Part shown: in pieces, positions 144 to 21,051 of the stretch
Layout of the letters: each line of letters starts with the position of its first letter
Numbering within the stretch: position 1 is the stretch's first letter
Source of the DNA: Guillardia theta CCMP2712
Taxonomy: Eukaryota > Protista > Cryptophyta
Length of the DNA stretch: 32,835 nt
NCBI RefSeq assembly: GCF_000315625.1
Contig: NW_005434651.1
Coordinates: 58,195 to 91,029 of the forward strand
Direction: 5' to 3'
Notes under the pieces: generated by a model
Databases searched by the model: none
What the model was told of the DNA's origin: nothing
Seen by the model: only the letters and a program-made list of their open reading frames with translations
Made by a program: the position numbers and the translations under genes

Positions 144-3100
144 CCCAATACCATGATGCAGACAAGATTTCTTCCTCCTCAGGTTCCTACCCCTACCCCT
201 ACACCTTCCCCTTCCCTTTCCCTTCCTCTGCCCCTGCCCCTTCCCCTGCCCCTTCCCTTTCTCCTTCTTCTGCCCCTGCCCCTGCTCTTGTACCTGCTTT
301 TGCTGAGAGAGCTCATCATTAATTTCCTGGATGGAACTGAAAAGTCCGATCTTACACGTGTACATAATGATACAATAGTGTTGATACAATTTCAATCTTT
401 AAATCCGATTACAAACTCTTACACTCCCTGCCTCTCTCCCTCTACTCCTCCCGTCTCCTCTGTCTTCCTTCCCCTCCCGTCTCTTCCTTCCTCCTCTCTT
501 TCCCCTCCCGTCTCTTCCTCCCGCACGCATCCTCCACTCTCTGCGCATTTCACACGTCTTGCCCCATCCTAGCCTGCATCGACGCCAGCAGCGCAAGTGA
601 AGGGTTCGTCGACGAGCAAACAGTGCGCTGAGCTCTAGATCGCAGCTTCGCTCGGTCTCCTATCCTCTCCACTCCCACCTCCTTCAGCTCCTGCTCGTTC
701 ATCGCCGCCAGCGCCTCGACATCGATCTTCTCTTCCTCAAACTTGGGCAGCAGCTCCTCCAGCCCGAGCTCCTTCAGCCAGGACTGGATCTTCTTCCTCG
801 ACGCCTCCTCCTCCCGTGCGCGCGATCCACCCACGGGCTGGTATGGCTCGTTATGCATCATCGAGAAGAGGAAGTTGTTAGCGATCTTCCGCTGCTTCCT
901 CATCCTCTTCTCTTCCAGGTTGCAACTCTCGTCAAGGTCATGGTTGTGCTCAGGCATGACGCGCAGAACGACCCAACCGGCGACCTCTCCCTCCACCTCG
1001 CTCACGTACTCGCACACCATCTCCCACTTGCAACAAGGCTTGTCGTACGCATGCCCCATCCCGTGCGTGCAGATATACTTCTTCTGCGTCCCCTTGAACC
1101 CTGTTGCCTTCCTCCTCGTCTCCCAGCGCGCCGGCCAGCAGCCGGGGTTGCCGTCAGGCTTCTCCTTGTCTCCCACGAACTGCTCCAGCTCGTCCATCTG
1201 CCAGCTCCTCTTCGCTTCCGGCGGTGACATGGTTGTGTTCCTCATCGACTTACCCGCCCTCAGGTCCGAGCGATGGTCAGCTTGCCGCAGCCTTGAGCCT
1301 GCATGGTCTCTGCTCTTGCTCCCTCCCTTCCCGTTGGACTTCTTCGTTCGCTTCTTCTGCTTCTTCTTGGAGGATCTTCATGACGAGTCTCCTCTGCCCC
1401 ACCGTCGGCATGAGGCACGGAGCAGCGATCGCGGTTGTTTTTCTCCTGCTCTTCTGCGATATGGTCCAGCATATCAGCGCTGGAGTCTGAGAGAACTTCT
1501 CGGTTGCCAGTGAAGCCATCGTCATGATCGTCTTCATGAATCACCGCTGCCATGTTCGCTCCTGTCTCCGTCATCTCTCAGTGCCTCCACCTCAGACCAC
1601 TGCTGGTTGTCGGCATGAGGATCTTGAACTGCCCTCAATTGGGGAGAGGGAATGTTTTTAGTCAAACTGGGCTTTGAAGCGAGACAGTTAAATACTGATA
1701 TCCAATCGTTCATAGTGGTTTCCAACTGCCCTTGTGCTGAGAGGAGTTCGTACTAGATTTTCGGCCTAGACCCTTCAGTTTCAAATTTCCCCTGTCCTGT
1801 TTCAATCCTCCCCCTGCTGGTTTCGCCGGCTGAACAGTTCCCGGCTGCCAGCCCAATGGCCGGCAGCGGCAGCTGAAAATGCAGACAGCGCCGTCCTGAC
1901 GCGACGACACCCTCTGTTGTCCACTACGTGTGATCCTCCCCCTCCCTCTTCTCCCCTGTCGTGTACTCCCTTACTAGAAACGAAGCCTGTCGAACCCTCT
2001 TCTGCCAACTTCGCCTATCCCCATCTTTCCATACCTCAACTCAGACACGTATCTTCTCTCCCATTGGACCTTCGAGTACTCTTATCCCCCTCCTCGTCTC
2101 GAGTCCTTATCTTCAGATCTCAACGAGTTGCATCCAGCCATCACCATGGCAGAGTGTGTACTGGAGATGGTGCAATCTATTCTCGTTAGCATGTGGAATG
2201 AAGCACGTATGGTGATGACCAATCAGGAGCAGCTGCAGAGCCTGGCTTCGGATGTGAAGGATGTCATGAGCCCGCTCCTCGAGCTTTTGCGTCGAAGCCT
2301 TCGCATAGATCAAGAGCAGCAGGTAGGCTTCGCCCTCAACCGTGTCTACTTCACCCTGTCGTCGGTGCTCGCATTCATCAAGATGAAGGCGGGGGGTCGA
2401 TCAGAGTCGTCTGTGACGCTGGAGGGCAAACCAGATGCCGAGCTTGGCGGAAAGCGAGCGGAGATGTACTTCGCGGTAGAAGCCTTGATGCAGGCCCTGC
2501 AGGGCGAAGGCGGCACGGCCATGAGCGAAGCAGGGGACGGGAAGCAAGACGAGGTGGTAACCAGCAAGCCAGCATACAGGAGGATGAAGGAGGCAGCCGA
2601 GCAGCTGGCAGCTGAAGCCGACATCTTCTCTTCCTCAGAGGCTGAGGAGAGCGACGGGACGCGCCATCCATGGTGTCTGAATCCCTTGGAGCTGCAGGTT
2701 GAGCGAAACAGTCGTGGCAAACCAAAGCATGTGCTGGGGTCCGGAGGGTTTGCGGTCGTGTACCGGGCCTCGTATCAAGGCACGGAGGTTGCGGTCAAGG
2801 AGCCTCATAATCCTCGCGATCTTGAAGGCAGCAAGCTGATGCGGAAAGCATTCTTCAGAGAGGCCAACAACCTCTTCAGAATACATCATCGCAACGTGAT
2901 AGAGCTGGTCGGAGCCATGGTCGTGGACGAGGAAGGGAACCCTTGCTTCCTGCTGGTCACCGAGCTACTGCGGCGACCCCTCACCGAGTACATCGAGGAG
3001 ACGATGAAGCCAGCGAGTGAGAGCGAGCGAAGAGCGCGGGGCCACGTGGTGATGCTTGGACTGGCGGAGGGTCTGGCGTACCTGCACTCTATGCGCATCA

Positions 3101-3621
3101 TCCATAGGGACATCAAGCCCCAGAACATCATGCTTGACGACAAGGACATCCCAAAACTCATCGACTTTGGGCTCTCAAAGGAGAAGGAAGAGATTGCTCA
3201 TTCCAAAGGAAGCACTAGGCTTGCAGGAACAATGAGCTGGATGTCGCCAGAGAAGCGACGAAGCAAGCCTACGTCCACCGCATCTGACGTGTACGCCCTC
3301 GGGCTGGTGATGATGAATGTGATGACGCTTGAGACGCCGCCGGAGAGCCAGGAGGAGCGCGAGAAGCTGCTCAAGGAAACGAGTGACAAGGGAGTGAGCG
3401 GGCAGGTGTCGCTATGGTGCATACACGAGGACCCGTCGAGGAGGCCGACGGCGGCTACTGTTGCAATGAGCTTGACGATGGACCGAGATCTATGCGGGGG
3501 AGGGGAAGTGCTGACAGGTGAGTCGAAGGTGTAAATAAGGAAGGATTGTTTTGTAAGAGACTTGTATAGGAGGCGATCGGCAAGTATCAGATACCACCGA
3601 TGACGGAGAAACTATTGTTCG
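144..3621 (+). repeat. Segmental direct duplication, copy A (~3.45 kb; partner at 13637-17087)
   Basis: Sequence from cccaatacc(a/c)gatgcagacaagatttc through the SAM gene, the intergenic region, kinase exon 1 and the intron is near-identical to 13637-17087. Similarity collapses at the start of the WD40 array. Confidence 0.93.
550..1574 (-). CDS. FAR1/MULE-like (WRKY-GCM1 fold) Zn-finger + C-terminal SAM domain protein, copy A (exon structure uncertain)
   Basis: ORF 550-1245 contains YICTHG...CCKWEMVCEY...GWVVLRVMPEHNHDL (C..C..W.V...HNH.L pattern of FAR1/AFT-type domains) and IQSWLKELGLEELLPKFEEEKIDVEALAAMNEQELKEVGVERIGDRAKL (classic SAM). The upstream MTETGAN ORF (1260-1574) is out of frame here but in frame in copy B. 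Confidence 0.7.
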
Positions 3622-4771
3622 ATGGCAGGAACGTTGCTCATTTCATGGACATTTTCGTCAGATTTTGATAGTCTCATTGTCAAGGGATGGCAGTAAGGTT
3701 GTAACAGGGCTAGATGACAACACTGCAAGAGTCTGGGAGGCAAGCAGTGGTAGGCAATCTGTTTGCTTTGAAGGACACACGAGAAATGTCAAATGTTGCG
3801 TATGGACTTGTGATGGAGGATTGATTGCATCGGGCTCTGATGACAAAACGGTGAGAGTGTGGGAGGCGAGCAGCGGTAAACAAATCAGCTGCTGTAGAGG
3901 ACACACAGATGGAGTTACTACCGTGGTATGGTCTGGCGATGAAAAGCTTGTTGTAGCTGGATCTTGGGATTCAACTATAAGGGTATGGGATGCGAGGGCT
4001 GGGAGGCAAATCAGCTGCTTGAAGGGGCATACAGATGGTATCTATAGCGTGTCGTTGTCGTGGGACTCGAGGATGATCGCTTCAGGCTCAGATGACCGCA
4101 CCGTGAGGATATGGGATGTGAGCAGTGGCAAGCAGCTGAGATGCTGTAGAGAGCACAATGGCAGCGTCACTTGTGTCTCGTGGTCAGAAGATGGAAGGAT
4201 GATTGCCTCCGGATCAGATGACGGGACTGTGGGGGTGTGGGAGGCGAGCAGTGGTAACTTAATCAGCTGTTGTGAAGGTCATGAGGGTAGTGTAATGATA
4301 GTTGCTTGGTCAAGAGATGGAAGGATGATTGCCTCCGGATCAGATGACGGGACTGTGGGGGTGTGGGAGGCGAGCAGTGGTAACTTAATCAGCTGTTGTG
4401 AAGGTCATGAGGGTAGTGTAATGATAGTTGCTTGGTCAAGAGATGGAAGGATGATTGCCTCCGGATCAGATGACGGGACTGTGAGGGTGTGGGAGGCGAG
4501 CAGTGGGAGGCCTATAAGATCATGCAAGGAGAAAACAGATTTTGTCAACAATGTCTCAGGAGCTGTGAGATTGATTGAGACAACGAGTGGGAAGCTGGGT
4601 TATCAGATTGACCGTTCGGAAGGACCTCGTCCGTTTCCTACTCATATTGCATGGCTGGGAAATGGACAGCTGATCGCTTCGGGCACTGATGATCAAAAAG
4701 TTCGTCTCTGGGAAGGGATGTTTTTTGAATTGAAGGAGATGAGGAGGTCGAAGCGCTTGAAGACGGCATGA
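2146..4771 (+). CDS. MLKL-like helical NTD - protein kinase - WD40 protein, copy 1 (exons 2146-3517, 3570-4771)
   Basis: Kinase motifs GSGGFAVV, VAVK, HRDIKPQN, DFG, WMSPE, SDVYALG. A 52-nt phase-1 intron ACAG|GTGAGT...TGTATAG|GA (3518-3569) joins in frame (GGDRQVSDTTDDGETIVRWQERCSFHGH) to the WD40 ORF 3665-4771, which has about 8 GH..WE/WD repeats. Confidence 0.88.
4189..4506 (+). repeat. 126-bp (one WD40 unit) tandem repeat, about 2.5 copies
   Basis: Units start at 4189, 4315 and 4441 (agatggaaggatgattgcctccggatcagatgacggg...); the first two are identical. Confidence 0.95.
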
Positions 4772-5204
4772 TGACTGGCAACGAATCAGGACCGAAACAT
4801 TGAAGTCATGCATTCACTGACTTCCAGTGACAGTGAGGGATATCATATGATCTGATGGCGATTAAGATTGGTGAAACAACTGTCATAATTGTTGCGCAAG
4901 TATAAATTAGCGATCAAGCAGGCTTGACAGTACTCAGTAAAAAGTAACTCAGTTATGGTTTCAGCGTGTTTCATGTATGGCCCTCATGCAATGGTTCTGC
5001 TGAGTTGCTCTATGGAAGAAAGACTCCATTTGTTTGAGTTGTATGATACTCATTTACGCTCTCGTTCTCTCGATCGCGTTGAAAATATTTGATGCCGCAA
5101 GCATTTCTCTAAGAACTCTTTGTTTTTACCGCTGCAACGTTTACAGCCCCGTCATGAGAGGAGCAGGTTTTGTCTGATTTCCATCATACTTTCTGTGTGC
5201 ATTC

Positions 5205-7704
5205 TCATGCTCTCATTCTTTTACCCGATTGTAATTGCCCTTTCATCTCCTCTGCATCGCCATCTTCGTTATCACTCCCTGCTCTTCCTCTTCTCCTCTT
5301 TTTTGACAGCCATTCTCTCCAATTGATGCTTACGCGTTTAGGACTCCTGACCCATAGAATGCCTTGCCATATCTTGATTGTCCTGTCCCAGGACCCAGAT
5401 GCAATCACTCTCCCATTCCACGACCATGATACGCATGACACACCACTCGCATGACCTCTCAAATACCAGATTCTCTTGCCTGTGACGACCTCCCATATTC
5501 GCAAGGTTTTGTCCCATGAGCTTGATGCGATCATCCTTGCATCGCCCGACCATGACACACTGGTAACAACGTGTGTATGTCCCTCACAGCAGCTCATCTG
5601 TCTGCCCCCCTGTACCTCCCATATTCTCACAGTATTGTCGTGTGAACCTGATGCAATCATCTTGCTATCTGCAGAAAATGATACGCAGGTGACAGAGTGG
5701 GTGTGACCTTCTAGACAAGTCATCTCGCTTCCACTGCTTGCTTCCCATATTCTAATAGTCCCATCTTCGGATCCTGAAGCAATCATCTTCCCATCTCCCG
5801 ACCATGACACGCTAGTAACTTTGTTATTCGTACCTTGCAGGCGAAGAATTTCTCTCCCATTACTCACCTCCCACACTCTTAAAGTTTCGTCATTTGAACC
5901 CGAGACAACCAATCTCCCATCTGCCGACCATGATACACTTTTGACACAGTCTGTATGTCCCAAAAGACAGCTGATTTGATTTCGACTATTCGCATCCCAT
6001 ATCCTTATTGACCGGTCGTCTGAGCTCGAGGCAATAAATCTTCCATCAGCTGACCAAGAAACACAGTTCACGATGCCCGAGTGACCTCGAAAGCATGCAA
6101 CCTCCTGGTAAGTGTTTGGATCCCATAATCTCACAGTCTCATCAGCTGACCCAGACACTATGAACTTTCCGTCCCATGACCAGCAAACACTGCACACGCT
6201 GCCAATGTCTCCACGCAAACAGCTGTTGTACCTCCATTGAACCATATTGTCATCTTCTTCAGAACCCCTGATTAAACTCCCTCCCCTCCCTACAAAACAA
6301 AAGAATTAGCCCAAGAAATCCAAGCATGTTTTGACCTTTAAGAACCTGACCTCCCCCGCATAGATCTCGGTCCATCGTCAAGCTCATTGCAACAGTAGCC
6401 GCCGTCGGCCTCCTCGACGGGTCCTCGTGTATGCACCATAGCGACACCTGCCCGCTCACTCCCTTGTCACTCGTTTCCTTGAGCAGCTTCTCGCGCTCCT
6501 CCTGGCTCTCCGGCGGCGTCTCAAGCGTCATCACATTCATCATCACCAGCCCGAGGGCGTACACGTCAGATGCGGTTGTTGAGGGCTCGCCTCGTCGCTT
6601 CTCTGGCGACATCCAATCTAGAGTGCCTCCCCCTGCACTGTGCACTGGTGCAACCATGGATTGTTTCTCCTTCGAAAGCCCCAGGTCGATGAGTTTTGGG
6701 ATGTCCTTGTCGTCAAGCATGATGTTCTGGGGCTTGATGTCCCTATGGATGATGCGCATAGAGTGCAGGTACGCCAGACCCTCCGCCAGTCCAAGCATCA
6801 CCACGTGGCCCCGCGCTCTTCGCTCGCTCTCACTCGCTGGCTTCATCGTCTCCTCGATGTACTCGGTGAGGGGTCGCCGCAGTAGCTCGGTGACCAGCAG
6901 GAAGCAAGGGTTCCCTTCCTCGTCCACGACCATGGCTCCGACCAGCTCTATCACGTTGCGATGATGTATTCTGAAGAGGTTGTTGGCCTCTCTGAAGAAT
7001 GCTTTCCGCATCAGCTTGCTGCCTTCAAGATCGCAAGGATTATGAGGCTCCTTGACCGCAACCTCCGTGCCTTGATACGAGGCCCGGTACACGACCGCAA
7101 ACCCTCCGGACCCCAGCACATGCTTTGGTTGGCCACGACTGTTTCGCTCAACCTGCAGCTCCAAGGGATTCAGACACCATGGATGGCGCGTCCCGTCGCT
7201 CTCCTCAGCCTCTGAGGAAGAGAAGATGTCGGCTTCAGCTGCCAGCTGCTCGGCTGCCTCCTTCATCCTCCTGTATGCTGGCTTGCTGGTTACCACCTCG
7301 TCTTGCTTCCCGTCCCCTGCTTCGCTCATGGCCGTGCCGCCTTCGCCCTGCAGGGCCTGCATCAAGGCTTCTACCGCGAAGTACATCTCCGCTCGCTTTC
7401 CGCCAAGCTCGGCATCTAGTTTGCCCTCCAGCGTCACAGACGACTCTGATCGACCCCCCGCCTTCATCTTGATGAATGCGAGCACCGACGACAGGGTGAA
7501 GTAGACACGGTTGAGGGCGAAGCCTACCTGCTGCTCTTGATCTATGCGAAGGCTTCGACGCAAAAGCTCGAGGAGCGGGCTCATGACATCCTTCACATCC
7601 GAAGCCAGGCTCTGCAGCTGCTCCTGATTGGCCATCGCCAAGTGTGCTTCATTCCACATGCTAACGAGAATAGATTGTACCATTCCGTGAACGCTCTCTG
7701 CCAT
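5205..7704 (-). CDS. MLKL-like helical NTD - protein kinase - WD40 protein, copy 2 (exons 7704-6336, 6289-5205)
   Basis: Kinase ORF 6259-7704 (DLG variant). A putative 46-nt intron AAAG|GTCAAA...GCTAAT...TTTGTAG|GG (6335-6290) joins in frame (GRGGSLIRGSEEDDNMVQW) to ORF 5205-6245 with 7 WD40 repeats. The donor site is weaker than in the other copies. Confidence 0.82.
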
Positions 7705-9655
7705 GTTGGGAATCTAGGCAAGGAAAGCAAATCAGATCGAATTAAGAAGGTTTAGGAGTATGGGGGAGTAATGCGGACGGATTTGATTGGGATTTGGGAA
7801 TAGATTGTGAAGATGTCATGACTACATCTTTTTGAAGGCAGCACAGATGAGTCATGTAGAAGGGGATGAGACGCTTTGGCGATGTTGCATGCGAAGGAGA
7901 CGCATTCTAACAAGAGTCAGGTAGTTGCACTGTAGGTGGGCAGGCAGATGGAGAGGACTTGCAGGGATTGACGGTGTGATGCACACCCTCCATATGTGTA
8001 CCCCACCCTACGTTATGTCAATTTGGACCCCTACCCTTCTAGATGATTTCCTACCTACGTTGACCACCCACCCCTGCATCCATCCCCTCTATCCGAAAGG
8101 AACGCATCCTCTTCGGGCGCCCTCCTAGCTTCAACGTCACACTTCTCCATCATCCCCCGATCCCTCCAGACAATTGTTTCCCTTTATGTGCACAACACGA
8201 ACAGAAATCCAACCTTGACATGATTAACCCGCATTACTCCCCCATACTCCTAAACCTTCTTAATTCGATCTGATTTGCTTTCCTTGCCTAGATTCCCAAC
8301 ATGGCAGAGAGCGTTCACGGAATGGTACAATCTATTCTCGTTAGCATGTGGAATGAAGCACACTTGGCGATGGCCAATCAGGAGCAGCTGCAGAGCCTGG
8401 CTTCGGATGTGAAGGATGTCATGAGCCCGCTCCTCGAGCTTTTGCGTCGAAGCCTTCGCATAGATCAAGAGCAGCAGGTAGGCTTCGCCCTCAACCGTGT
8501 CTACTTCACCCTGTCGTCGGTGCTCGCATTCATCAAGATGAAGGCGGGGGGTCGATCAGAGTCGTCTGTGACGCTGGAGGGCAAACTAGATGCCGAGCTT
8601 GGCGGAAAGCGAGCGGAGATGTACTTCGCGGTAGAAGCCTTGATGCAGGCCCTGCAGGGCGAAGGCGGCACGGCCATGAGCGAAGCAGGGGACGGGAAGC
8701 AAGACGAGGTGGTAACCAGCAAGCCAGCATACAGGAGGATGAAGGAGGCAGCCGAGCAGCTGGCAGCTGAAGCCGACATCTTCTCTTCCTCAGAGGCTGA
8801 GGAGAGCGACGGGACGCGCCATCCATGGTGTCTGAATCCCTTGGAGCTGCAGGTTGAGCGAAACAGTCGTGGCCAACCAAAGCATGTGCTGGGGTCCGGA
8901 GGGTTTGCGGTCGTGTACCGGGCCTCGTATCAAGGCACGGAGGTTGCGGTCAAGGAGCCTCATAATCCTTGCGATCTTGAAGGCAGCAAGCTGATGCGGA
9001 AAGCATTCTTCAGAGAGGCCAACAACCTCTTCAGAATACATCATCGCAACGTGATAGAGCTGGTCGGAGCCATGGTCGTGGACGAGGAAGGGAACCCTTG
9101 CTTCCTGCTGGTCACCGAGCTACTGCGGCGACCCCTCACCGAGTACATCGAGGAGACGATGAAGCCAGCGAGTGAGAGCGAGCGAAGAGCGCGGGGCCAC
9201 GTGGTGATGCTTGGACTGGCGGAGGGTCTGGCGTACCTGCACTCTATGCGCATCATCCATAGGGACATCAAGCCCCAGAACATCATGCTTGACGACAAGG
9301 ACATCCCAAAACTCATCGACCTGGGGCTTTCGAAGGAGAAACAATCCATGGTTGCACCAGTGCACAGTGCAGGGGGAGGCACTCTAGATTGGATGTCGCC
9401 AGAGAAGCGACGAGGCGAGCCCTCAACAACCGCATCTGACGTGTACGCCCTCGGGCTGGTGATGATGAATGTGATGACGCTTGAGACGCCGCCGGAGAGC
9501 CAGGAGGAGCGCGAGAAGCTGCTCAAGGAAACGAGTGACAAGGGAGTGAGCGGGCAGGTGTCGCTATGGTGCATACACGAGGACCCGTCGAGGAGGCCGA
9601 CGGCGGCTACTGTTGCGATGAGCTTGACGATGGACCGAGATCTATGCGGGGGAGG
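6350..9655. repeat. Large inverted repeat: arms ~6350-7776 and 8229-9655 (~1.43 kb), 452-bp spacer
   Basis: Kinase exons of copies 2 and 3 plus about 70 bp of upstream sequence are reverse complements (7704 pairs with 8301, 7776 with 8229). The proteins are identical up to DLCGGG. Confidence 0.95.
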
Positions 9656-10710
9656 GGAAGTGCTGACCGGTGAGTCAATCAATGTCTTTGTTATTTTGAT
9701 GATGGTTTTGCTTGGGGGATCTTATTTAACCATTTCTAACAGGGGATTGTTTTGAGGGAAACAACAACCGATGTGATGATGATGAGATGCTTTTGTTGTG
9801 GAAAGAGGCGAAAACTCTTTCGGGTCATACCGATGTTGTCAACTGCGTTTCATGGTCGGGAGACGGGAAAATGATTGCTTCAGTGTCAGGGGATAAGACC
9901 TTGAGAATATGGGAGGCGAGCAGCGGCAGGCAAATCAGTTGTCTTGAAGGACATACAGACATAATCTGGTTCGTTTCTTGGTCAGGCCAAGGGGGACTGA
10001 TTGCGACTGCATCATCTGACAAGACTGTGAGAATATGGAACCCAGTTTCTGGTAAGGAACTTCGAATTCTCAGACACAAGAATCGAGTTAACTGTGTCTC
10101 GTGGTCTGGAGATGGAAAAAAGATTGTCTCCGGATGTTCAGACCACAAAGTGAGGATATGGGACGCAACTTTTGGATATGAAATCAAATGTTGTAAAGGG
10201 CATAGCCAGTTTGTCAGGTGCGTGGTATTTTCAAGCGATGGAAAGTTGGTCGTGTCGGGATCGATGGACAAGACCTTGAGGATGTGGGATGCGGTCACTG
10301 GCAAGGAAGTTCGATGCTGGAAGGCACACTCAAAGGGTATTAATAGTTTGTCGTTCTCACCAGATGGGAGCAAGATTGCATCCACTTCGTCAGACAACAC
10401 AGTGAAGGTCTGGGATGTTAGCAATGGAGATCAAGTACATTGTTTCGCAGGACACGAGGAAAAGGTTTTGTCAGCTTGTTGGTCAGCAGACGGTGGACTG
10501 ATCGCTTCGGGTTCGTCCGACAAGACGGTACGCTTGTGGGATGCGAGCAATGGACGAGCAATCCGATACCTGAAAGGACATACTTGGACTGTAGGAAGCG
10601 TTTCCTTCTCACAGAACAACATGATGATTGCCTCCGGTTCATCCGACAAGACCGTGAGAATTTGGGAAGCGACAGTATGGGTGCAGAGCAAACGCATGCG
10701 ACTCAAGTGA
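8301..10710 (+). CDS. MLKL-like helical NTD - protein kinase - WD40 protein, copy 3 (exons 8301-9669, 9743-10710)
   Basis: Kinase ORF (DLG variant). A 73-nt phase-1 intron ACCG|GTGAGT...TTCTAACAG|GG (9670-9742) joins in frame (GDCFEGNNNRCDDDEMLLLW) to ORF 9787-10710 with 7 WD40 repeats. Confidence 0.88.
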
Positions 10711-10904
10711 TGATGAATAGGGGAAAATAAGTTAGTGAAGATGAAATGATTGCTGAGAGTGATTGTAATGTTCTGAGTCAGAAACCCTCCAGCAGTGCTA
10801 GTCCGACCGCATGTGCCCTTCGCCCCCCCCTTCGCCCACCGCGTCTCGGGCACGGGGCTGGACGCCGCTTAGCTCAAGAACGTAATCGGCACGTCGCATC
10901 TGGC

Positions 10905-11206
10905 CTCGCAGGTGGCGATCAACGTGTCGGAGTACCAGGGAGTGGCGGGCGGGGCCGACCCGCGCTACAACTCGGTTGTCTGGTCGTCCGTGAAGAAGTA
11001 GGTGCTGTAGGTGCAGCGGAAGGTGCAGGCCATCGGCTGCAGGGTGAGGTGGACCGTGGCCGTCTGCAGTCATCGGTGGGCACGACGCAGCCAAGTACCT
11101 CGAGTGCATCCGGCGGGCGGAGGCGATGGGCGACCGCCGCATCGACAGCATCCCGTGCGAGAACCACTACACCGCCTGCTTCGACTCGCTCGCTATTTAC
11201 TTCTAG
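10905..11206 (+). pseudogene. GC-rich decayed coding fragment of unknown origin
   Basis: Codon-like GC3-rich reading SQVAINVSEYQGVAGGADPRYNSVVWSSVKK*VL*VQRK... and, after a frameshift, DAAKYLECIRRAEAMGDRRIDSIPCENHYTACFDSLAIYF*, with internal TAG stops. Confidence 0.4.
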
Positions 11207-11483
11207 CGAAGTAAATACATTGGAAACGTGAGGAGACAAACTTTTATAAATCAATCTAAAATTTCAATGATTTTTACGAACACCCAAAAAATACATTTAT
11301 TCCTCTTTATTTTCCTTACCGAATCCCTATTATATTTTATTCAATTAAAATAATAGCTGCGCATTGGTGCGGATCCGATCATCACACAAAATAACCAAAA
11401 ACAAACGAGCGCACACACGGAGTGTGCCAGAGCAAACATAATATCAATGAAAATTATGAATCCTTCAAGGATCATATAACAAA

Positions 11484-11840
11484 AGAGGCAAAGGGGCAGG
11501 TGAATTGAATTTCACCCTTTGCCAAAATTCACCCTTTGCACACACACACGGCTTAATAATTCTCATCTTTATTTTTTTCGCCTCTATAACATGCATAATT
11601 TATTTAGGCAAAGGGGCAAAGGGTGAAATCGTTATTTTCATATTCTATTCTATATACCCATAAAGTAAACAAAATTTTATATTATCCTAAAATTTGAATT
11701 TCACCCTTTGCCCCTTTGCCTAACGTCTATATATCCTCCTTTTACTCATCTTTTACCCTTGTACCCAGCTAAAACATGGCGAAGGGTCCCCTTTGCCACC
11801 CCTTTGCCACCCCTTTGCCACCCTTTGCCACCCTTCGCCT
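11484..11840. repeat. Array of (CAC)CCTTTGCC direct and inverted repeats, including a perfect 26-bp inverted repeat (11604-11629 / 11698-11723)
   Basis: ttaggcaaaggggcaaagggtgaaat is the reverse complement of atttcaccctttgcccctttgcctaa; four tandem ccctttgcca units lie at ~11789-11832. Confidence 0.9.
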
Positions 11841-11930
11841 ACCTCCTTTTTATTAAAACCCCTTTATCATTACCATTATTATACTAAATTATATTCTTTA
11901 TTTTATTATTATCTATCTTTCTTTATTATA

Positions 11931-12680
11931 AATGTCATGTGACAATAGATATCAAAATTTATATCAATAGGCAGCACAAACAGGACAACTTTACAACCTG
12001 AAATAAATCAAATCAATGCCGATATCAATATCCTTTATTCTAATGTCGATGTGCTCAATGATGAGACAAATTTACTATTTAATCGATATGAGACGATCGA
12101 AGCGCTTGCAATTGATACATCCAATAACCTAATATCAACATCTAATCAATTATATGAAGGTATCGAAGACAATTCGAATGAGATCAATTTTATTCTGCGC
12201 CGCATTAATGATCTATCACAGACCGAAGAAACAGTCATCATGAACCAAATGAGAATGTTGATCTATTTGAAATATGATCTTGATCTTGAAAAATCAACAA
12301 TTAAATTCGCTTTGGAAAATGGGAGCTTAATATCGATTCAATACATCAAAAATAAATTAGATGAATTAGCAGGAGCTGACCAAGCCGAGGATGCAGAGGA
12401 TGCAGCAACAGACGCAGCACAGGCAGGGGCCGATGCTGTCAAGCAGCTACTAGGGAAGCAGTTATTGCTTTGATGCGATATCTTCAAGATATAGATGATC
12501 AATTGAAAGTTCAAGATGATGTCATTAAGGGTTATTCAAGAGACCTTATAGATGGTGAAAATTTAGGCTTTGGATCTAATCTGAATTTTATATATGATTT
12601 AGAAATTGTGACATTGCCTAATGGCTGCAATGTCAATAAATGGACAACTCGACTTTTAGGCGAACAGATCTTAACATTAG
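11931..12680 (+). pseudogene. Disrupted coiled-coil, virus-like (possibly structural) protein gene
   Basis: ATG at 11931 is followed by stops/frameshift, then TTLQPEINQINADINILYSNVDVLNDETNLL...TSNNLISTSNQL (ORFs 12051-12473 and 12470-12763 in shifted frames). Confidence 0.45.
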
Positions 12681-12878
12681 GCGAAGAATTGACAGATAAT
12701 ATTCGCGCATTCTTTTGTTTCTTAGCTCTCGATATTCTGGGTCATTTGTGTATTTTTGTTTGATATATTCATTTATTCTCTTGCATTCTTTATCGTGAAA
12801 TTCTTTATCAGTTGCAATCTTCTTTTTATAGTGCAGTGCTTGTGGGGTTGGCATTGTTTTCGAAAGAAACAAATTCAC
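12633..12878 (-). CDS. Small basic hypothetical protein (virus-like)
   Basis: MPTPQALHYKKKIATDKEFHDKECKRINEYIKQKYTNDPEYRELRNKRMREYY; AT-rich, K/R/Y-rich helical small ORF. Confidence 0.45.
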   Translation of the reverse strand: MNLFLSKTMPTPQALHYKKKIATDKEFHDKECKRINEYIKQKYTNDPEYRELRNKRMREYYLSILRLMLRSVRLKVELSIY

Positions 12879-12954
12879 TTTAATATAAAGTAAGAAAGTT
12901 TTTATCTATTTACTTTATATATATTAAAAAACAATCAAATCATTTTTATATAAA

Positions 12955-13167
12955 TTAGATTATCCGGCTCTTCCATGTGTTACCTTCTTTGTATAGTTGG
13001 TATGTTGCCATGCTTGCGGCTGTAGGCTTGGCAGTGCCACCGGTTGAAATGATGTCATTTAATCTTTTTATTATCTTTCGAGCTGTTATTTTGTCCTTAT
13101 TATCTTCGTATTGCTGTTTTTTCTTATCTAATATATCGGCTTTCTTCTTATCATAATATTTCTTCTA
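12955..13167 (-). pseudogene. 5'-truncated small basic virus-like ORF
   Basis: Manual translation: *KKYYDKKKADILDKKKQQYEDNKDKITARKIIKRLNDIISTGGTAKPTAASMATYQLYKEGNTWKSRII*; it lacks a start codon and abuts GC-rich sequence. Confidence 0.45.
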
Positions 13168-13636
13168 GCGCTCTCAGTGCTGAGGTGATCCTCCTCCTCG
13201 GAAAGCTCCGCGATGTGCTTCCTGCGGAGGAAGTCCTTGGCGCAGTCGCGGATGGGGAAGACGCGCTCGACGTACGGGTCGGGCTTGATCAGGCCCTCCT
13301 GCTCGAACTCCTCCGCGATGGCTAGCCGGAAGATGCTGCAGCAGGCGCCCGCGGAGGACGCCACCAAGCCTTTCCTGGGTCGTCAATTTGTTGATCACGA
13401 GTGTAATCGTCTGATAAAGAAAATTGCTGACTAAATGGAAACGAAAGAGTAAACATGGTCCAAAATAGATGCACAGTCCAGCCTCAAAGGAACTTCTTAA
13501 TGTCCGGTTGAGCCGGCTCAACCGCAAATCTCTTTCCAGTCCAACACTATTCGAGGTGTAAGGTAGATGGACAAACATAAATACATTGGTAGTTTTTTGA
13601 GAGGTTCAATGCTTGTTCACAAAAAACATCTTTCGA

Positions 13637-16600
13637 CCCAATACCACGATGCAGACAAGATTTCTTCCTCCTCAGGTTCCTACCCCTACCCCTACCCCTA
13701 CCCCTACCCCTTCCCTTTCCCCTTCTTCTGCCCCTGCCCCTGCCCCTGCCCCTGCTCTTGTACCTGCTTTTGCTGAGAGAGCTCATCATTAATTTCCTGG
13801 ATGGAACTGAAAAGTCCGATCTTACACGTGTACATAATGATACAATAGTGTTGATATAATTTCAATCTTTAAATCCGATTACAAACTCTTACACTCCCTT
13901 CCTCTCTCCCTCTACCCCTCCCGTCTCCTCTGTCTTCCTTCCCCTCCCGTCCCTTCCTTCCTCCTCTCTTTCCCCTCCCGTCTCTTCCTCCCGCACGCAT
14001 CCTCCACTCTCTGCGCATTTCACACGTCTTGCCCCATCCTAGCCTGCATCGACGCCAGCAGCGCAAGTGAAGGGTTCGTCGACGAGCAAACAGTGCGCTG
14101 AGCTCTAGATCGCAGCTTCGCTCGGTCTCCTATCCTCTCCACTCCCACCTCCTTCAGCTCCTGCTCGTTCATCGCCGCCAGTGCCTCGACATCGATCTTC
14201 TCTTCCTCAAACTTGGGCAGCAGCCTCCAGCCCGAGCTCCTTCAGCCAGGACTGGATCTTCTTCCTCGACGCCTCCTCCTCCCGTGCGCGCGATCCACCC
14301 ACGGGCTGGTATGGCTCGTTATGCATCATCGAGAAGAGGAAGTTGTTAGCGATCTTCCGCTGCTTCCTCATCCTCTTCTCTTCCAGGTTGCAACTCTCGT
14401 CAAGGTCATGGTTGTGCTCAGGCATGACGCGCAGAACGACCCAACCGGCGACCTCTCCCTCCACCTCGCTCACGTACTCGCACACCATCTCCCACTTGCA
14501 ACAAGGCTTGTCGTACGCATGCCCCATCCCGTGCGTGCAGATATACTTCTTCTGCGTCCCCTTGAACCCTGTTGCCTTCATCCTCGTCTCGGTCACTCGC
14601 CATGGCCCCAGCGGATAGTCCTTGGGAAGGTTTGCTGGGATGTCGTACGTGCGGCAAAGCTGCAGGATCTGCCAGCTCCTCTTCGCTTCCGGCGGTGACA
14701 TGGTTGTGTTCCTCATCGACTTACCCGCCCTCAGGTCCGAGCGATGGTCAGCTTGCCGCAGCCTTGAGCCTGCATGGTCTCTGCTCGCCTCCTGCGGCTG
14801 CTCCTGCACAGCGCCTTTGCCATGATCTGCTCTCCTGGGAGGATCTTCATGACGAGTCTCCTCTGCCCCACCGTCGGCATGAGGCACGGAGCAGCGATCG
14901 CGGTTGTTTTTCTCCTGCTCTTCTGCGATATGGTCCAGCATATCAGCGCTGGAGTCTGAGAGAACTTCTCGGTTGCCAGTGAAGCCATCGTCATGATCGT
15001 CTTCATGAATCACCGCTGCCATGTTCGCTCCTGTCTCCGTCATCTCTCAGTGCCTCCACCTCAGACCACTGCTGGTTGTCGGCATGAGGATCTTGAACTG
15101 CCCTCAATTGGGGAGAGGGAATGTTTTTAGTCAAACTGGGCTTTGAAGCGAGACAGTTAAATACTGATATCCAATCGTTCATAGTGGTTTCCAACTGCCC
15201 TTGTGCTGAGAGGAGTTCGTACTAGATTTTCGGCCTAGACCCTTCAGTTTCAAATTTCCCCTGTCCTGTTTCAATCCTCCCCCTGCTGGTTTCGCCGGCT
15301 GAACAGTTCCCGGCTGCCAGCCCAATGGCCGGCAGCGGCAGCTGAAAATGCAGACAGCGCCGTCCTGACGCGACGACACCCTCTGTTGTCCACTACGTGT
15401 GATCCTCCCCCTCCCTCTTCTCCCCTGTCGTGTACTCCCTTACTAGAAACGAAGCCTGTCGAACCCTCTTCTGCCAACTTCGCCTATCCCCATCTTTCCA
15501 TACCTCAACTCAGACACGTATCTTCTCTCCCATTGGACCTTCGAGTACTCTTATCCCCCTCCTCGTCTCGAGTCCTTATCTTCAGATCTCAACGAGTTGC
15601 ATCCAGCCATCACCATGGCAGAGTGTGTACTGGAGATGGTGCAATCTATTCTCGTTAGCATGTGGAATGAAGCACGTATGGTGATGACCAATCAGGAGCA
15701 GCTGCAGAGCCTGGCTTCGGATGTGAAGGATGTCATGAGCCCGCTCCTCGAGCTTTTGCGTCGAAGCCTTCGCATAGATCAAGAGCAGCAGGTAGGCTTC
15801 GCCCTCAACCGTGTCTACTTCACCCTGTCGTCGGTGCTCGCATTCATCAAGATGAAGGCGGGGGGTCGATCAGAGTCGTCTGTGACGCTGGAGGGCAAAC
15901 TAGATGCCGAGCTTGGCGGAAAGCGAGCGGAGATGTACTTCGCGGTAGAAGCCTTGATGCAGGCCCTGCAGGGCGAAGGCGGCACGGCCATGAGCGAAGC
16001 AGGGGACGGGAAGCAAGACGAGGTGGTAACCAGCAAGCCAGCATACAGGAGGATGAAGGAGGCAGCCGAGCAGCTGGCAGCTGAAGCCGACATCTTCTCT
16101 TCCTCAGAGGCTGAGGAGAGCGACGGGACGCGCCATCCATGGTGTCTGAATCCCTTGGAGCTGCAGGTTGAGCGAAACAGTCGTGGCAAACCAAAGCATG
16201 TGCTGGGGTCCGGAGGGTTTGCGGTCGTGTACCGGGCCTCGTATCAAGGCACGGAGGTTGCGGTCAAGGAGCCTCATAATCCTTGCGATCTTGAAGGCAG
16301 CAAGCTGATGCGGAAAGCATTCTTCAGAGAGGCCAACAACCTCTTCAGAATACATCATCGCAACGTGATAGAGCTGGTCGGAGCCATGGTCGTGGACGAG
16401 GAAGGGAACCCTTGCTTCCTGCTGGTCACCGAGCTACTGCGGCGACCCCTCACCGAGTACATCGAGGAGACGATGAAGCCAGCGAGTGAGAGCGAGCGAA
16501 GAGCGCGGGGCCACGTGGTGATGCTTGGACTGGCGGAGGGTCTGGCGTACCTGCACTCTATGCGCATCATCCATAGGGACATAACTCCCCAGAACATCAT

Positions 16601-17087
16601 GCTTGACGACAAGGACATCCCAAAACTCATCGACCTGGGGCTTTCGAAGGATAGAAAGGTTGCAAATCAGGCTCCCACCACAAAGATTGCAGGTACACTA
16701 GATTGGATGTCGCCGGAGAAGCGACGAGGCGAGCCCTCAACAACCGCATCTGACGTGTACGCCCTCGGGCTGGTGATGATGAATGTGATGACGCTTGAGA
16801 CGCCGCCGAAGAGCCAGGAGGAGCGCGAGAAGCTGCTCAAGGAAACGAGTGACAAGGGAGTGAGCGGGCAGGTGTCGCTATGGTGCATACACGAGGACCC
16901 GTCGAGGAGGCCGACGGCGGCTACTGTTGCAATGAGCTTGACGATGGACCGAGATCTATGCGGGGGGGGGGAAGTGCTGACAGGTGAGTCGAAGGTGTAA
17001 ATAAGGAAGGATTGTTTTGTAAGAGACTTGTATAGGAGGCGATCGGCAAGTATTAGATACCACCGATGACGAAGAAACCATTGTTCA
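13637..17087 (+). repeat. Segmental direct duplication, copy B (partner 144-3621)
   Basis: Near-identical to 144-3621 apart from discrete swapped patches and scattered SNPs/indels. Confidence 0.93.
14020..15043 (-). pseudogene. FAR1-like Zn-finger + SAM gene, copy B, frameshifted in the SAM domain
   Basis: ORF 14207-15043 is continuous through the HNHDL motif. A 2-bp deletion at ~14224 (cagcctccag vs cagctcctccag in copy A) truncates SAM (ELGLEAAAQV*). Confidence 0.68.
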
Positions 17088-18147
17088 ATACAAACTGATC
17101 AGCTGTTCAAGTCAGTATGATGTCAACATCAGTAATGTTTCATTGTCAGGCGATGCGAAGTTTTTTGCTTCGATATTGTCGCAGGGAAATGTTATCTTGG
17201 TATTTGAGGCAATCAGCGGCAGGCAAATCAGTTGTCTTGAAGGACATACAGACAAAGTGAACAGTTCATCATGGTTGTCGTGTGGAAGTAGGATAGTGTC
17301 AGGATCCTTGGACGGGACTGTGAGGGTGTGGGAGGCGAGCAGTGGTAATCAGATTTGTTGCTGTCAGGGAGATTTCACATGGGTTTTGTTTGTTTCGTCT
17401 TCAAGGGACGGGCAAATGATCGCTTCAGGATGCTCAGACGGGACTGTGAGGGTGTGGGAGGCAAGCAGCGGTAATGAAATCAGCTGCTGTCAGGGACACT
17501 CCGGCAGTGTCACTTGTGCTTCATGGTCTCCTGATGGAAAGTTGATTGCATCAGGGTCCTCGGACGGGACTGCAAGGGTGTGGGAGGCGAGCAGCGGTAA
17601 TGAGATCAGCTGCTGTCAGGGACACACAGGAATAATTGAAAGTGTTGCTTGGTTAGGCAGTGGAAAGATGATAGCATCAGAATCCTTTGATGGGACTGTG
17701 CGGGTGTGGGAGGCGAGCAGCGGGAGGCAAATCAGTTGCCTAAACGATGACAACGGATATACGAAGAGCATCGCTTTTGTGCAGAGTTCAGAATTGATAG
17801 TTTTTGGATCCTGGGACGGGACTGTGAGGGTGTGGGAGGCAAGCAGCGGTAATCAGATTTGTTGCTGTCAGGGGCATGAAGGAGCAGTGAATAGTGTCAG
17901 CCTTTCAGAAGACGGGAAGTTGATAGCATCAGGGTCCACGGACGGGACTGTGAGGGTGTGGGAGGCGAGCAGCGGTAATCAGATTTGTTGCTGTCAGGGA
18001 CATGTAGGAGCGGTGAATAGTGTCAGCCTTTCAGAAGACGGGAAGTTGATAGCATCAGGGTCCACGGACGGGACTGTGAGGGTGTGGCAAGAAAGCTCAT
18101 TTGTCCTAAAACCATGTAGAAGACCAAAACGGCTGAAGTTCAGATGA
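15615..18147 (+). CDS. MLKL-like helical NTD - (pseudo)kinase - WD40 protein, copy 4 (exons 15615-16983, 17036-18147)
   Basis: Kinase with HRDITPQN and DLG. A 52-nt intron (16984-17035), identical to that of copy 1, joins in frame (GGDRQVLDTTDDEETIVQY) to ORF 17143-18147 with about 8 WD40 repeats. Confidence 0.87.
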
Positions 18148-18261: not shown

Positions 18262-20447
18262 TCAGTGCCTGGCAGCCCAGGCGAGGTCGAGGGAGATATA
18301 AGGGGGAAGGAAACCTTTGCTGGCCGCCATCAGCTCAAACGCGAGGGCCCCGAAATGGCTGCTGAAAGTCCCGATGAAGTAATCGCAGGAGGAGAGCAGG
18401 AAGAGATCAAGGATGGCCGTCTCCCCCGCTGCCCCCGCGTCGAGCAGGCCGTGCCTGATTCTGTCCTCCACGTACCAGTTCGAAGAGAGCATGGAAACAT
18501 CCAGCTCGCTGCGGATGACATCCACGTCGAGCTTCGAGGAAATCTCCTTGATAGCCTCCTCGTCGTCACTTGCGATGAACACCTGAAGCTGCTTCAGTCT
18601 CTTCCTCGTCTCATCTAGCAAGCTCAACCTGCGTCGCTCCGAACTTGTCGATCATCGTCTGTATGCTCTCCACGAAGCGGGAGGATGGTTGGCAGGGAGT
18701 TCGATACCCCACAGAGGCTTCGCAAGCGTCTCCTCGCCTTATGTGAACCCCTATCACCCTCCCCTTAGCCCCGAACCCGATCCTGTTCTTGAGCATGCGG
18801 AGCTCGGCCTGCCTGCTCGGCCAGAGCTGCAGCAGGTGGAGGAGGACATGCGAGCGATACCAGAAGCTTCCCTGGTGAGGAGGGAGCAGCTCGCTGGGGA
18901 CGAGAATGCCGATGTTAGTGTTGAGGTTTCCCGTCTCCTCCATGGAGAGCCCAGCTCGCTTGATGTGCCCGCGCGTCAGCTGCTTTGCGTGTATCTCCTC
19001 TATGCTCTGAGGGGCGTCAGAGGTAGAAACACAGGAAGGAGCTCAACCTTGAACGAGCTGCAGTTGGTCAGTGGGAGGAAGTAGCACTCGAGGCTAGCTT
19101 GCCCGCAGTCTGCATGCTTCATCCATGGCCAGTCCTCCTGGTGAAGCACTAGGGTCCGCCTGGACATCAACGCTTCTGTGACACCAGCCACGAGGAACTG
19201 TATCATGATCCCGATCCCCTGCAAGGGAACGCGCAGCCGAAAGGCTTCACCGCATGCTGAGGGAAACTGCACTCGCGCGATCTGCATGCTGGGTCAGGAG
19301 AGGAGCTGCTGAGGTTGCGGCTGCTGCACCTGACGGGATAGAGCAGCCGCACCGACAGAGAAGGAGCTTGCGGCCTTGCACGGGTGGCTCGAAGGGTCTG
19401 TAGGAGGAAGGTACCTGGAGGTAGCAATGTCAGCTTGTCAACCACGGCGAGCTCTTGTGCAGACCTTGTTTCCTTCAAGATGTTGTGATAACATGTTTCT
19501 CCAAACCAATCTCTCTCACATTCACACTGTCCCTCCACGCACCTCCCATGACCTGAGCATGTCTGATTCTCCTCCTCCGAGCAGCTTTGAGACTTCTCAA
19601 AACATTTCAACCCAACCTTCGGCCGCGAGCAGGCGCTCTGACCCTGTGGAGCTGCCGGGTCGAATGAGTTGTTAACAAAGAATATTTGAGACGTTGTTTG
19701 TAAAACGTTTCCTTGAACGTCCTTGAGATGAACTACTAGCGTGTGTCTCCCCTCATCAAGATCCAGAGGAATCGCAATCTTCTTCGATCTTCGGTAGTCC
19801 CCGAGCACAACTGAGTCAACCTCAACTACCAGCGAGTACGGTCGTCTTTGAAAGATTGTGTTCCGGGAGTACATCAGGTCCATCGCCTCTTCCAGATCCA
19901 GCTGCATCTCCCTATCCGTGATTCTTGCCTCCACAAATCTCGGCATGTTCCTGCCGAAGGTGAAGTCCGGGGGAGGATGCTGCACAAGGACGGACATGAA
20001 CGACCGCAGCCAATCGTTCCATCGCTCTCCTCCCACCTCCTCCCCATCGAAAACCGCCCCGTCCTCGTTGATTCGCACGAAGAAGTTGAGCTCAGCGACT
20101 GGGCCTTGAAAGACTCCGTTGACGTTGGTCGACACCTTGAGCACGTGCGGCCCTTCCTCCAGCCCGGGTATCCTTGGCGTCAGGTCTGAGCTGATAGGAA
20201 GGTGAATGTGCCGGTCCCAGTCAATCTCAATGTCGATATCGCCCTGTGCTGATTCATCTGCCAACGAGAATGCGAGCTGCACGTCATCAGGATGCTCGAA
20301 GACGAAGTTCGGAGGCGGGAAACTCAGCTCCACCTTGAAGCCAGACTGCATTCTCTCGTCGTCGCTGCTCACTAGCGCACATGTTATCAGTAGACCAGCC
20401 AGGATGCTGAGACTCGTGCTCGGACGGGGCAGCCTCCTGCTCATCAT
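18262..20447 (-). CDS. Secreted/Golgi alpha-1,6-fucosyltransferase-like (GT23/FUT8-like) protein with EGF-like domain, multi-exon
   Basis: N-terminal hydrophobic signal LSILAGLLITCALVSS; EGF-like CSGHGRCVEGQCECERDWFGETC; GT23 motifs VIGVHIRRGDAC, VFIASDD, LDLFLLSSCDYFIGTFSSHFGALAFELM spread over ORFs 19203-20477, 19000-19287, 18611-18943 and 18262-18627. Confidence 0.8.
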
Positions 20448-20626
20448 CGCAGACCATCCAGGAGCTTTAACCTGCACATCTGTGGAGCAGTATCAACAAT
20501 GCGTGAATGCCCGACCAATTCCGTCATATTGACCTTGAGCACTCCTGCTCCCTCCCTCCTGCTAAAGTTCTTCCCTGTCCTTCCCATTACATTCATGTAT
20601 CCTCCTCCCCTCTTCACTAGTTTACT

Positions 20627-20940: not shown

Positions 20941-21051
20941 TTGATAACAATGCTTGGAACAAGCAATGCAGTGAATGGTTTGAGGTGAAACAGAAACAGT
21001 TGTATACCAGCAAGACCTGGATAGACCGTGAGAGCGGTACTGCAACAAGAT

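Follow-up and report, generated by a model that had tools for sequence, protein, structure and literature searches.

Spliced helical bundle-kinase-WD40 fusions in the cryptophyte Guillardia theta: an MLKL-like architecture with a possible role in regulated cell death or immunity

A 32,835-nt stretch of the genome of the cryptophyte Guillardia theta CCMP2712 (contig NW_005434651.1, positions 58,195 to 91,029 of the forward strand; this whole stretch is referred to as the window) contains, between its positions 2.1 and 18.1 kb, four pairs of open reading frames (ORFs), in each of which a kinase ORF and an ORF made of WD40 repeats lie on the same strand. This arrangement raises the question of whether each pair is a single gene and, if so, what kind of protein it encodes. 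An initial annotation, made from the sequence alone, viewed the pairs as in-frame fusions joined by a short phase-1 intron, and the products as receptors in which an MLKL-like death domain is controlled by WD40 sensors. Here, we examine the structure, relatives and evolution of the four genes, designated c1 to c4, which we interpret as spliced fusions of a predicted four-helix bundle, a kinase and a WD40 propeller, and consider how probable a function in cell death or immunity is.

Removal of four GT..AG introns produced open frames with a single terminal stop in 4/4 genes, the spliced products being 857 (c1), 817 (c2), 778 (c3) and 826 (c4) amino acids (aa) long, which agrees with the initial annotation. 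Exon 1 is 1372 or 1369 nt in length, and therefore every intron is in phase 1; in all four genes it is located after the sequence DLCGGG[EQ]VL[TK]. The parts of the genes are as follows.

2146-3517, plus strand: c1 exon 1; four-helix bundle (about aa 1-120, 2146-2505), brace helices (about aa 125-168) and kinase (aa 194-437), with HRDIKPQN and DFG
3518-3569, plus strand: c1 intron, predicted; 52 nt, GTGAGT..TATAG, phase 1
3570-4771, plus strand: c1 exon 2; acidic linker, 8 WD40 blades and basic tail (..SKRLKTA)
6336-7704, minus strand: c2 exon 1; bundle, brace and kinase, with HRDIKPQN and DLG
6290-6335, minus strand: c2 intron; 46 nt, GT..AG, phase 1, spliced out in a contig of run X5
5205-6289, minus strand: c2 exon 2; linker, 7 WD40 blades and basic/acidic tail (..GKRMRA)
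8301-9669, plus strand: c3 exon 1; bundle, brace and kinase, with HRDIKPQN and DLG
9670-9742, plus strand: c3 intron; 73 nt, GT..AG, phase 1, spliced out in a contig of run X1
9743-10710, plus strand: c3 exon 2; linker, 7 WD40 blades and tail (..SKRMRLK)
15615-16983, plus strand: c4 exon 1; bundle, brace and kinase, with HRDITPQN (catalytic-loop Lys replaced) and DLG
16984-17035, plus strand: c4 intron, predicted; 52 nt, phase 1, same sequence as the c1 intron
17036-18147, plus strand: c4 exon 2; linker, 8 WD40 blades and tail (..PKRLKFR)

To examine splicing directly, sequencing reads were used for the region 5205-10710, which covers c2 and c3; the type of runs X1 and X5 was guessed by software. 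A mismatch-free contig of 2419 nt from run X1 joined 8290-9668 to 9742-10710, with 73 nt having GT..AG ends absent. This contig started 11 nt upstream of the c3 ATG and ended 66 nt beyond 10710; as it spans all of the c3 coding sequence with flanks, it represents the complete spliced transcript of c3. A contig of run X5 joined 5205-6288 to 6335-6379, and 46 nt of c2 (CT..AC on the plus strand) were absent. Depth across the intergenic region 7781-8148 was zero in both runs, whereas contigs of the DNA-like run X13 retained both introns and extended into part of the spacer between the genes. Thus, X1 and X5 behave as RNA, for which removed introns and zero intergenic depth are the expected pattern, and X13 behaves as genomic DNA. 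Raw RNA reads of run X20 were limited to 19, which mapped to gene 3' ends, away from the junctions. These data show that c2 and c3 are transcribed and spliced, with the introns that the initial annotation placed at 6290-6335 and 9670-9742 precisely removed in the X5 and X1 contigs and kept in X13. We regard all four paralogs of the region as expressed or expressible.

The intron site is also kept in paralogs that are only about 40% identical, detected in the genome of this strain (a single 87.1-Mb assembly of 669 contigs was searched). On contig C112, the paralog carries a 41-nt phase-1 GT..AG intron at the same protein position; in those on C29 and C99, the corresponding site contains GT..AG candidates of 36 and 45 nt, respectively. 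The latter two candidates are in frame, and therefore the bundle, kinase and WD40 repeats are found in single ORFs (1232 and 1250 aa) whether spliced or not. In addition, a metagenomic relative (P0019) has the same order of N-terminal domain, kinase and WD40 repeats. Taking gene models and domain assignments together, we consider it very probable that the four genes are real spliced fusions. It should be noted that the bundle-kinase-WD40 architecture is invisible in the one public gene model that we found for c1 (P0018; 2146-3534 of the window). This 316-aa model starts at the internal Met147 and ends by reading into the intron, and therefore both the bundle and the propeller are missing from it.

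What is the domain that precedes the kinase? The first 190 residues of the window copies had no significant match in Pfam; c1 matched MLKL_N (PF22215, gathering score 27 bits) with 13.3 bits (E 0.061), and c3 had no match. When 25 N-termini of the family were scanned singly, MLKL_N was the commonest Pfam match, occurring in 8/25 and exceeding the cut-off in one. P0003 scored 28.9 bits against this cut-off of 27 (E 9e-7) and P0007 22.7 bits, and one of the 25 members, P0020, matched RPW8 (27.2 bits, E 3.4e-6). P0003 was in turn linked to the N-terminal domain of the window proteins at E 2e-15 in a profile search. The homology to MLKL is transitive, passing through relatives, of which P0003 exceeds the MLKL_N cut-off. 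A profile search with the N-terminal domain in 1.84 billion proteins retrieved only 17 cluster representatives, and in 8/8 of those inspected the domain was followed by a kinase.

Structure prediction pointed in the same direction. An AlphaFold2 model of the N-terminal domain, with six paralogs as input, had a mean local confidence (pLDDT) of 76.8 and a predicted TM score (pTM) of 0.71. It contained four long helices (residues 2-22, 27-51, 54-82 and 92-119), followed by brace helices (132-139 and 142-164) leading into the kinase, and a second model, of bundle plus kinase, showed the same layout (pLDDT 80.3, pTM 0.83). In a Foldseek search with the N-terminal domain, the N-terminal domain of MLKL (2msv) was first (E 0.069, probability 1.0, TM 0.56/0.67), several further MLKL entries were in the top ranks, and there was no match at E 0.001. 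Exhaustive structural alignment placed AtMLKL3 (6ka4) first, with Z 10.8 over 158 aligned residues, human MLKL (6ux8) second (Z 10.6) and mouse MLKL (4btf) sixth (Z 10.0, rmsd 2.6), with the CC-R domain of plant NRG1 and the Rx coiled-coil (CC) domain lower in the ranking; sequence identity to MLKL in these alignments was only about 14-15%. Helical bundles may reach Z of about 13 through a common arrangement, which is the level of caution given for the aligner; the MLKL scores of 10-10.8 are below it, and therefore the fold evidence taken alone is suggestive only. In the search with bundle plus kinase, among the 50 Foldseek matches listed, only the alignment with mouse MLKL (4btf), at 464 columns, had a length sufficient for both domains; the kinase dominated this search, and no specific kinase subfamily stood out.

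Other searches with the N-terminal domain were less informative. In profile searches of the Protein Data Bank (PDB), MLKL was not significant, and the best matches were the ZAR1 CC domain (E 0.92, residues 5-68, non-significant) with a first profile and the Prp19 coiled coil (E 5e-4) with another, the latter of which was taken as compositional and set aside. A shape search of the ESM Atlas returned weak matches only, the best being a plant DUF7032-ARM family (TM 0.51). The best reading of the predicted fold and of the Pfam matches in relatives is that the N-terminal domain is an MLKL-like four-helix bundle with a brace, of the MLKL_N/HeLo/RPW8-CC type, as the initial annotation had proposed for its MLKL-like part. 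As a separate lead, the N-terminal consensus of the family, MAExxLxxVxxxLxxxxxEA (2146-2210 and 8301-8365 in the window), loosely resembles the MADA motif of plant CC-NLRs, MADAxVSFxVxKLxxLLxxEx (PMC6944444).

The second domain, a Ser/Thr protein kinase, was identified by Pfam as Pkinase at residues 194-437 in 4/4 copies, with E from 1e-38 to 1e-41. In c1, the Gly-rich loop (GSGGFAVV), VAVK, the alpha-C Glu, HRDIKPQN and DFG are all present. The kinases of c2 and c3 keep the catalytic residues and have DLG in place of DFG, as does the active kinase RIPK1, and c4 combines DLG with a K-to-T replacement in the catalytic loop. Judged by these residues, the c1-c3 kinases look catalytically competent and would not be pseudokinases of the MLKL type. 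Thus, the MLKL-like kinase fusion of the initial annotation holds for the order of bundle, brace and kinase; it does not extend to the pseudokinase character of MLKL, as VAVK, HRD..N and DFG/DLG are intact in c1-c3. The nearest solved kinases were PknB of S. aureus (top), CTR1, IRAK4 and FERONIA, and the closest sequence relatives outside the family were bacterial Ser/Thr kinases of about 30% identity, some of them with WD40 or TPR tails. The domain therefore appears to be placed among bacterial Hanks-type and eukaryotic TKL/IRAK-like kinases, in no specific family. Intact catalytic residues in c1-c3 and such neighbors (bacterial kinases, PknB, CTR1 and IRAK4) are in line with a different view of the genes, namely that they encode ordinary signalling kinases with a regulatory or oligomerising helical domain and a WD40 substrate scaffold, comparable to bacterial kinase-WD40 proteins of the PkwA type or to the kinase-WD40 unit of LRRK2, with no part in death or immunity. 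We return to this possibility below, after the evolution of the cluster and the remaining members of the family have been described.

The N-terminal domain and kinase are 95-100% identical (aa) between copies, whereas the WD40 parts are 40-51% identical and have no blastn match between copies, a contrast that was already pointed out in the initial annotation. The homology block common to all four copies has the extent of exon 1, in which 82 columns are variable. Of these, 53 fall in nt 1021-1140 (activation segment) and 13 in the first 120 nt (helix 1); the remainder of the exon, about 1100 nt, is approximately 99.3% identical among copies. The duplicated segments and the divergent patch are listed below.

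6350-7776 and 8229-9655: arms of a head-to-head inverted repeat, 99.93% identical, carrying exon 1 of c2 and c3, with a unique spacer of about 450 nt
144-3620 and 13637-17086, plus strand: 3.5-kb duplicated unit, 95.7% identity, containing an upstream SAM gene (minus strand) and, of c1 and c4, exon 1, the intron and the start (~50 nt) of exon 2
3166-3285 (c1), ~6565-6684 (c2), ~9321-9440 (c3) and ~16635-16754 (c4): divergent activation-segment patch, from D[FL]G to SPE

Substitution rates were estimated by the method of Nei and Gojobori. Synonymous divergence (dS) was 0-0.044 in the bundle and 0-0.014 in the kinase core, and it was 0.39-1.6 in the activation-loop patch among three loop variants (c2 and c3 have the same loop). 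In the WD40 exon, the proportion of synonymous differences (pS) was 0.73-0.86, which is saturated, and the ratio of non-synonymous to synonymous proportions (pN/pS) was about 0.44. The saturation of synonymous sites indicates that the WD40 exons diverged anciently, and the dS of only 0-0.044 indicates that exon 1, outside the patch, was recently homogenised at the DNA level. The homogenisation of exon 1, which left out the old activation-loop patch, took place through cassette duplication or gene conversion. With its effector/kinase exon homogenised, its sensor exons ancient and its loop patch old, the cluster is a clean case of mosaic concerted evolution. Co-variation of the activation loop with the WD40 part was considered and ruled out, as c2 and c3 share the same loop and their WD40 parts are only 40% identical. 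The spacer of the inverted repeat is presumably a shared promoter region. The SAM-domain ORFs of the 3.5-kb unit, which have a Cys/His-rich N-terminal part, are located at 550-1245 and ~14023-14716, both on the minus strand, and in the copy upstream of c4 the frame changes at about residue 164, where the SAM domain starts.

Some of these features could also suggest an artefact of assembly or annotation, or a set of decaying pseudogenes: an inverted repeat of 99.93% identity is hard to assemble, c4 has the K-to-T change in its catalytic loop, and the frame change is present in the SAM copy upstream of c4. However, the four frames are intact over 778-857 codons, spliced transcript contigs were found for c2 and c3, and contigs of the DNA-like run X13 cross 3/4 of the borders between unique and repeat sequence (6350, 8229 and 9655), and we regard this explanation as very improbable.

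The old divergence of the WD40 exons bears on the proposal of the initial annotation that they are hypervariable non-self sensors. Pfam detected seven WD40 matches in each second ORF, and inspection by hand gave 8, 7, 7 and 8 blades in c1 to c4, built from a very regular 42-aa unit. A 126-nt tandem unit was found in c1 at 4181-4506 (98% matches), and a period-126 array in c4 at 17417-18087 (76% matches). Recent duplications of the 126-nt unit were limited to two pairs, one in c1 (99.2% identical) and one in c4 (95.2%); the mean nucleotide identity of units within a gene was 52-58%, and repeats of c2 and c3 were at most 65% identical to one another. Across the 30 units, variability was highest at positions 14-16, 18, 24, 34 and 36; apart from position 24, these follow GH, fall where strand a begins or precede the conserved Asp. 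In WD40 structures generally, positions 14-16, 18, 34 and 36 would be on the top face of the propeller. At these positions pN/pS was 1.04-1.06, compared with 0.45-0.51 elsewhere, and thus the predicted top-face positions are neutral rather than positively selected.

If the arrays were under diversifying selection with repeat shuffling, as in HET-D/E, the peak of variation on the presumed top face and the two recent unit duplications would be consistent with it. Yet pS is saturated and pN/pS is about 0.44 overall, the variable positions behave as neutral, the c2 and c3 repeats are without high internal conservation, surface positions are the most variable ones in WD40 proteins generally, and other sequencing runs carry nearly identical sequence. 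We therefore consider hypervariable sensors unlikely. The arrays instead appear as old paralogous propellers, and the per-domain comparison of rates, which the initial annotation had suggested as a check, gave no non-synonymous excess in the WD40 part. The pattern is unlike that of HET-D/E, and diversifying selection on surface codons is unsupported in this one strain with saturated divergence.

All four propellers are followed by basic C-termini (c1, ..SKRLKTA, 4741-4771; c2, ..GKRMRA, 5205-5240; c3, ..SKRMRLK, 10675-10710; c4, ..PKRLKFR, 18115-18147). An ARM-tailed paralog on C44 likewise ends in ..SKRMRL, and the paralogs with dead kinases have no basic tail. These tails may serve in nuclear localisation or in membrane binding. 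More than 180 matches to the c4 propeller are present in the genome. Among other occurrences of the same regular WD40 type, one is attached to an unrelated kinase-like N-terminal ORF (C122:53219-56893, minus strand, L020), and another is on an ORF on C28 (L016) that has the sequence DGYDEMG, similar by eye to a NACHT Walker B motif.

The genome contains at least 12 related loci including the four window copies, and their tails consist of WD40 or ARM repeats. Members on C112, C29 and C99 have double-length WD40 tails and dead kinases, and those on C51 and C44 have ARM tails, the one on C51 (L012) with an ARM_LRRK2 Pfam match. Those on C33, C67 and C21 are shorter or incompletely resolved, and a bundle-like N-terminus was seen among these, by eye only, at C21. 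In the large paralogs L009, L010 and L011, the catalytic motifs are replaced by HGDLQPKN and GFE, and L010 also has no VAVK Lys; from these replacements, the three kinases look catalytically dead. In contrast, the ARM-tailed L012 has an active-type kinase with an HKD variant. All named relatives are from cryptophytes (Proteomonas sulcata and Hanusia phi). A protein search with region 1-450 of the 1250-aa paralog, which was word-limited and weak, found none at E <=1e-15 among proteins of 687-2187 aa and so brought up no long fused models.

Two diverged bundle-kinase genes, on C51 and C21, have an ORF of the caspase-like family Peptidase_C14 immediately upstream on the same strand.

L012:6500-8437 (C51) and L029:5322-7385 (C21), minus strand: C14 ORFs, 645-688 aa, with AGHG and DACR as candidate catalytic His and Cys

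Identity is 39% between the two C14 proteins and 32% between their kinase partners, and therefore the linkage has persisted through deep divergence. At C21, a 56-nt GT..AG stretch (L029, about 5307-5362, minus strand) is a candidate intron that would fuse the C14 frame to that of the bundle, which lacks a separate ATG there. The C14 family is expanded in this genome: near-full-length matches number at least ~20, and C97 carries a cluster at 155-232 kb. The linkage is an independent hint that points towards cell death. The coexistence of active-type (c1-c3 and L012) and dead (L009-L011) kinases resembles the division of labor between RIPK3 and MLKL, and, together with the C14 linkage of two members, it may suggest that the window proteins are upstream transducers, for which a separate effector, such as the pseudokinase paralogs or the caspase-like peptidases, would be the substrate of the active kinase and the bundle would be a homotypic adaptor. 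Against this, the same bundle is present on active and dead forms, and such a role seems quite unlikely to us.

How do these proteins compare with known systems? They share with animal MLKL the order of an N-terminal four-helix bundle, two brace helices and a kinase fold. However, MLKL is a pseudokinase, whereas the algal c1-c3 keep the catalytic residues, and therefore the algal proteins are outside MLKL proper; they also add C-terminal WD40 or ARM repeats, and no RIPK3/RHIM partner is known for them. Plant MLKLs are pseudokinases with a repeat-free C-terminal extension, unlike the algal proteins with their WD40/ARM arrays and mostly active-type kinases. Nevertheless, AtMLKL1-3 also combine a HeLo/four-helix bundle, a brace and a kinase-like domain and have an immune role, in a photosynthetic eukaryote as well (Mahdi et al. 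2020, as cited in the review PMC12881547). According to this review, some fungal HELL domains occur with kinase or pseudokinase domains, and effector domains can be joined directly to WD40, TPR or ANK repeats.

Fungal HET-E/HET-D/NWD proteins are alike in logic, in that a death effector is paired with WD40 sensors of 42-aa units. They differ in that the algal proteins have no NACHT/NB-ARC (Pfam search of the eight ORFs), their kinase occupying the central place, and in that the algal WD40 arrays, except for two units, have no high internal conservation. The effector-switch-repeat layout nonetheless parallels that of NLRs, as suggested in the initial annotation, whose notions of a kinase in place of NACHT and of a necroptosis-like executioner are to be read as analogies. 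Bacterial proteins of the PkwA type resemble the algal ones in having a Hanks-type kinase and then a regular WD40 array in one polypeptide, but Pfam MLKL_N is absent from the bacterial matches listed, and the algal genes have spliceosomal introns. In LRRK2/ROCO proteins, the kinase is likewise followed directly by WD40 repeats, and L012 has the ARM_LRRK2 match; the algal proteins, however, have no ROC-COR GTPase, LRR or ankyrin repeats, and their N-terminal domain is a different one. A literature search, with incomplete coverage, found no account of a full bundle-kinase-WD40/ARM protein or of MLKL-like proteins in cryptophytes.

By analogy with the molecular switch of MLKL, as described in PMC12881547, a cell death or immune role may be proposed for the family. 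The propeller would keep the protein off and bind a paralog-specific partner or ligand. Binding or loss of this partner would lead to kinase dimerisation and phosphorylation of the activation loop, and the switch in the kinase domain might be relayed through the brace helices, as in MLKL. The freed four-helix bundle would then oligomerise on a membrane and disturb it, the output being regulated cell death or a defence signal, and the divergent activation loops might set paralog-specific thresholds or partners. Candidate sensor, competent-looking candidate switch and candidate executioner would thus be found in one chain. In animals, plants and fungi, from which MLKL-like executioners are known, the usual arrangement is a sensor and an activating kinase on different polypeptides, or else a STAND NTPase as the switch. 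The ARM tails, the dead kinases and the C14 linkage fit a death or immune network over housekeeping signalling. Taken as a whole, with the mechanism included, the statement that the bundle-kinase-WD40 proteins act in regulated death or immunity is a tentative one, to which we give a little less than an even chance.

Several points weigh against such a role. The N-termini of the window proteins score under the MLKL_N threshold, so that their apparent homology runs through relatives. The modeled bundle fold scores within the range of common arrangements (Z < 13, Foldseek E > 0.001), the kinase looks active, unlike that of MLKL, and the solved kinases closest to it are generic ones, the WD40 divergence shows no non-synonymous excess, and the basic tails, if they are nuclear localisation signals, would fit a non-membrane role. 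In addition, the four window copies have no caspase neighbor. The view of the genes as ordinary signalling kinases, introduced above, is the main rival and draws on the same observations, that is, bundle matches in the noise range for helical proteins, WD40 exons that are purifying to neutral and tails resembling nuclear localisation signals. It accounts less readily for MLKL being at the top of two independent structure searches and for the MLKL_N and RPW8 matches of relatives. Similarly, three paralogs without catalytic residues retain the bundle, the linkage to caspase-like genes is conserved, and the family is lineage-restricted, multi-copy and clustered. We consider ordinary signalling possible, although rather unlikely.

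The death or immunity proposal can be extended further. In this extension, cryptophytes would have kinase-centered, NTPase-free, all-in-one death/immune receptors in which a WD40/ARM sensor gates an active kinase and loop phosphorylation frees an MLKL-type pore-forming bundle, and the pseudokinase paralogs and the linked, possibly fused, caspase-like peptidases would complete a necroptosis-like network with an origin independent of the animal RIPK3-MLKL axis. This extended form is doubtful in our estimate. Regulated cell death in protists is ecologically important and molecularly obscure, and a network of this kind, if it exists, would be usable against algal viruses or in bloom termination. 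As it includes kinases of both active and dead type, tails of WD40 or of ARM repeats and members linked to caspase-like genes, the family forms a natural series for experiment, which makes the age and modularity of necroptosis-like death directly testable.

The neighboring ORFs at 19203-20477 (minus strand) and 21028-22380 (plus strand) encode EGF-like and HEAT repeats and have no apparent link to the cluster. The region 11000-13000, which separates c3 from the c4 unit, is AT-rich, with 33-40% G+C compared with about 55% elsewhere, and no protein domain was recognised in it.

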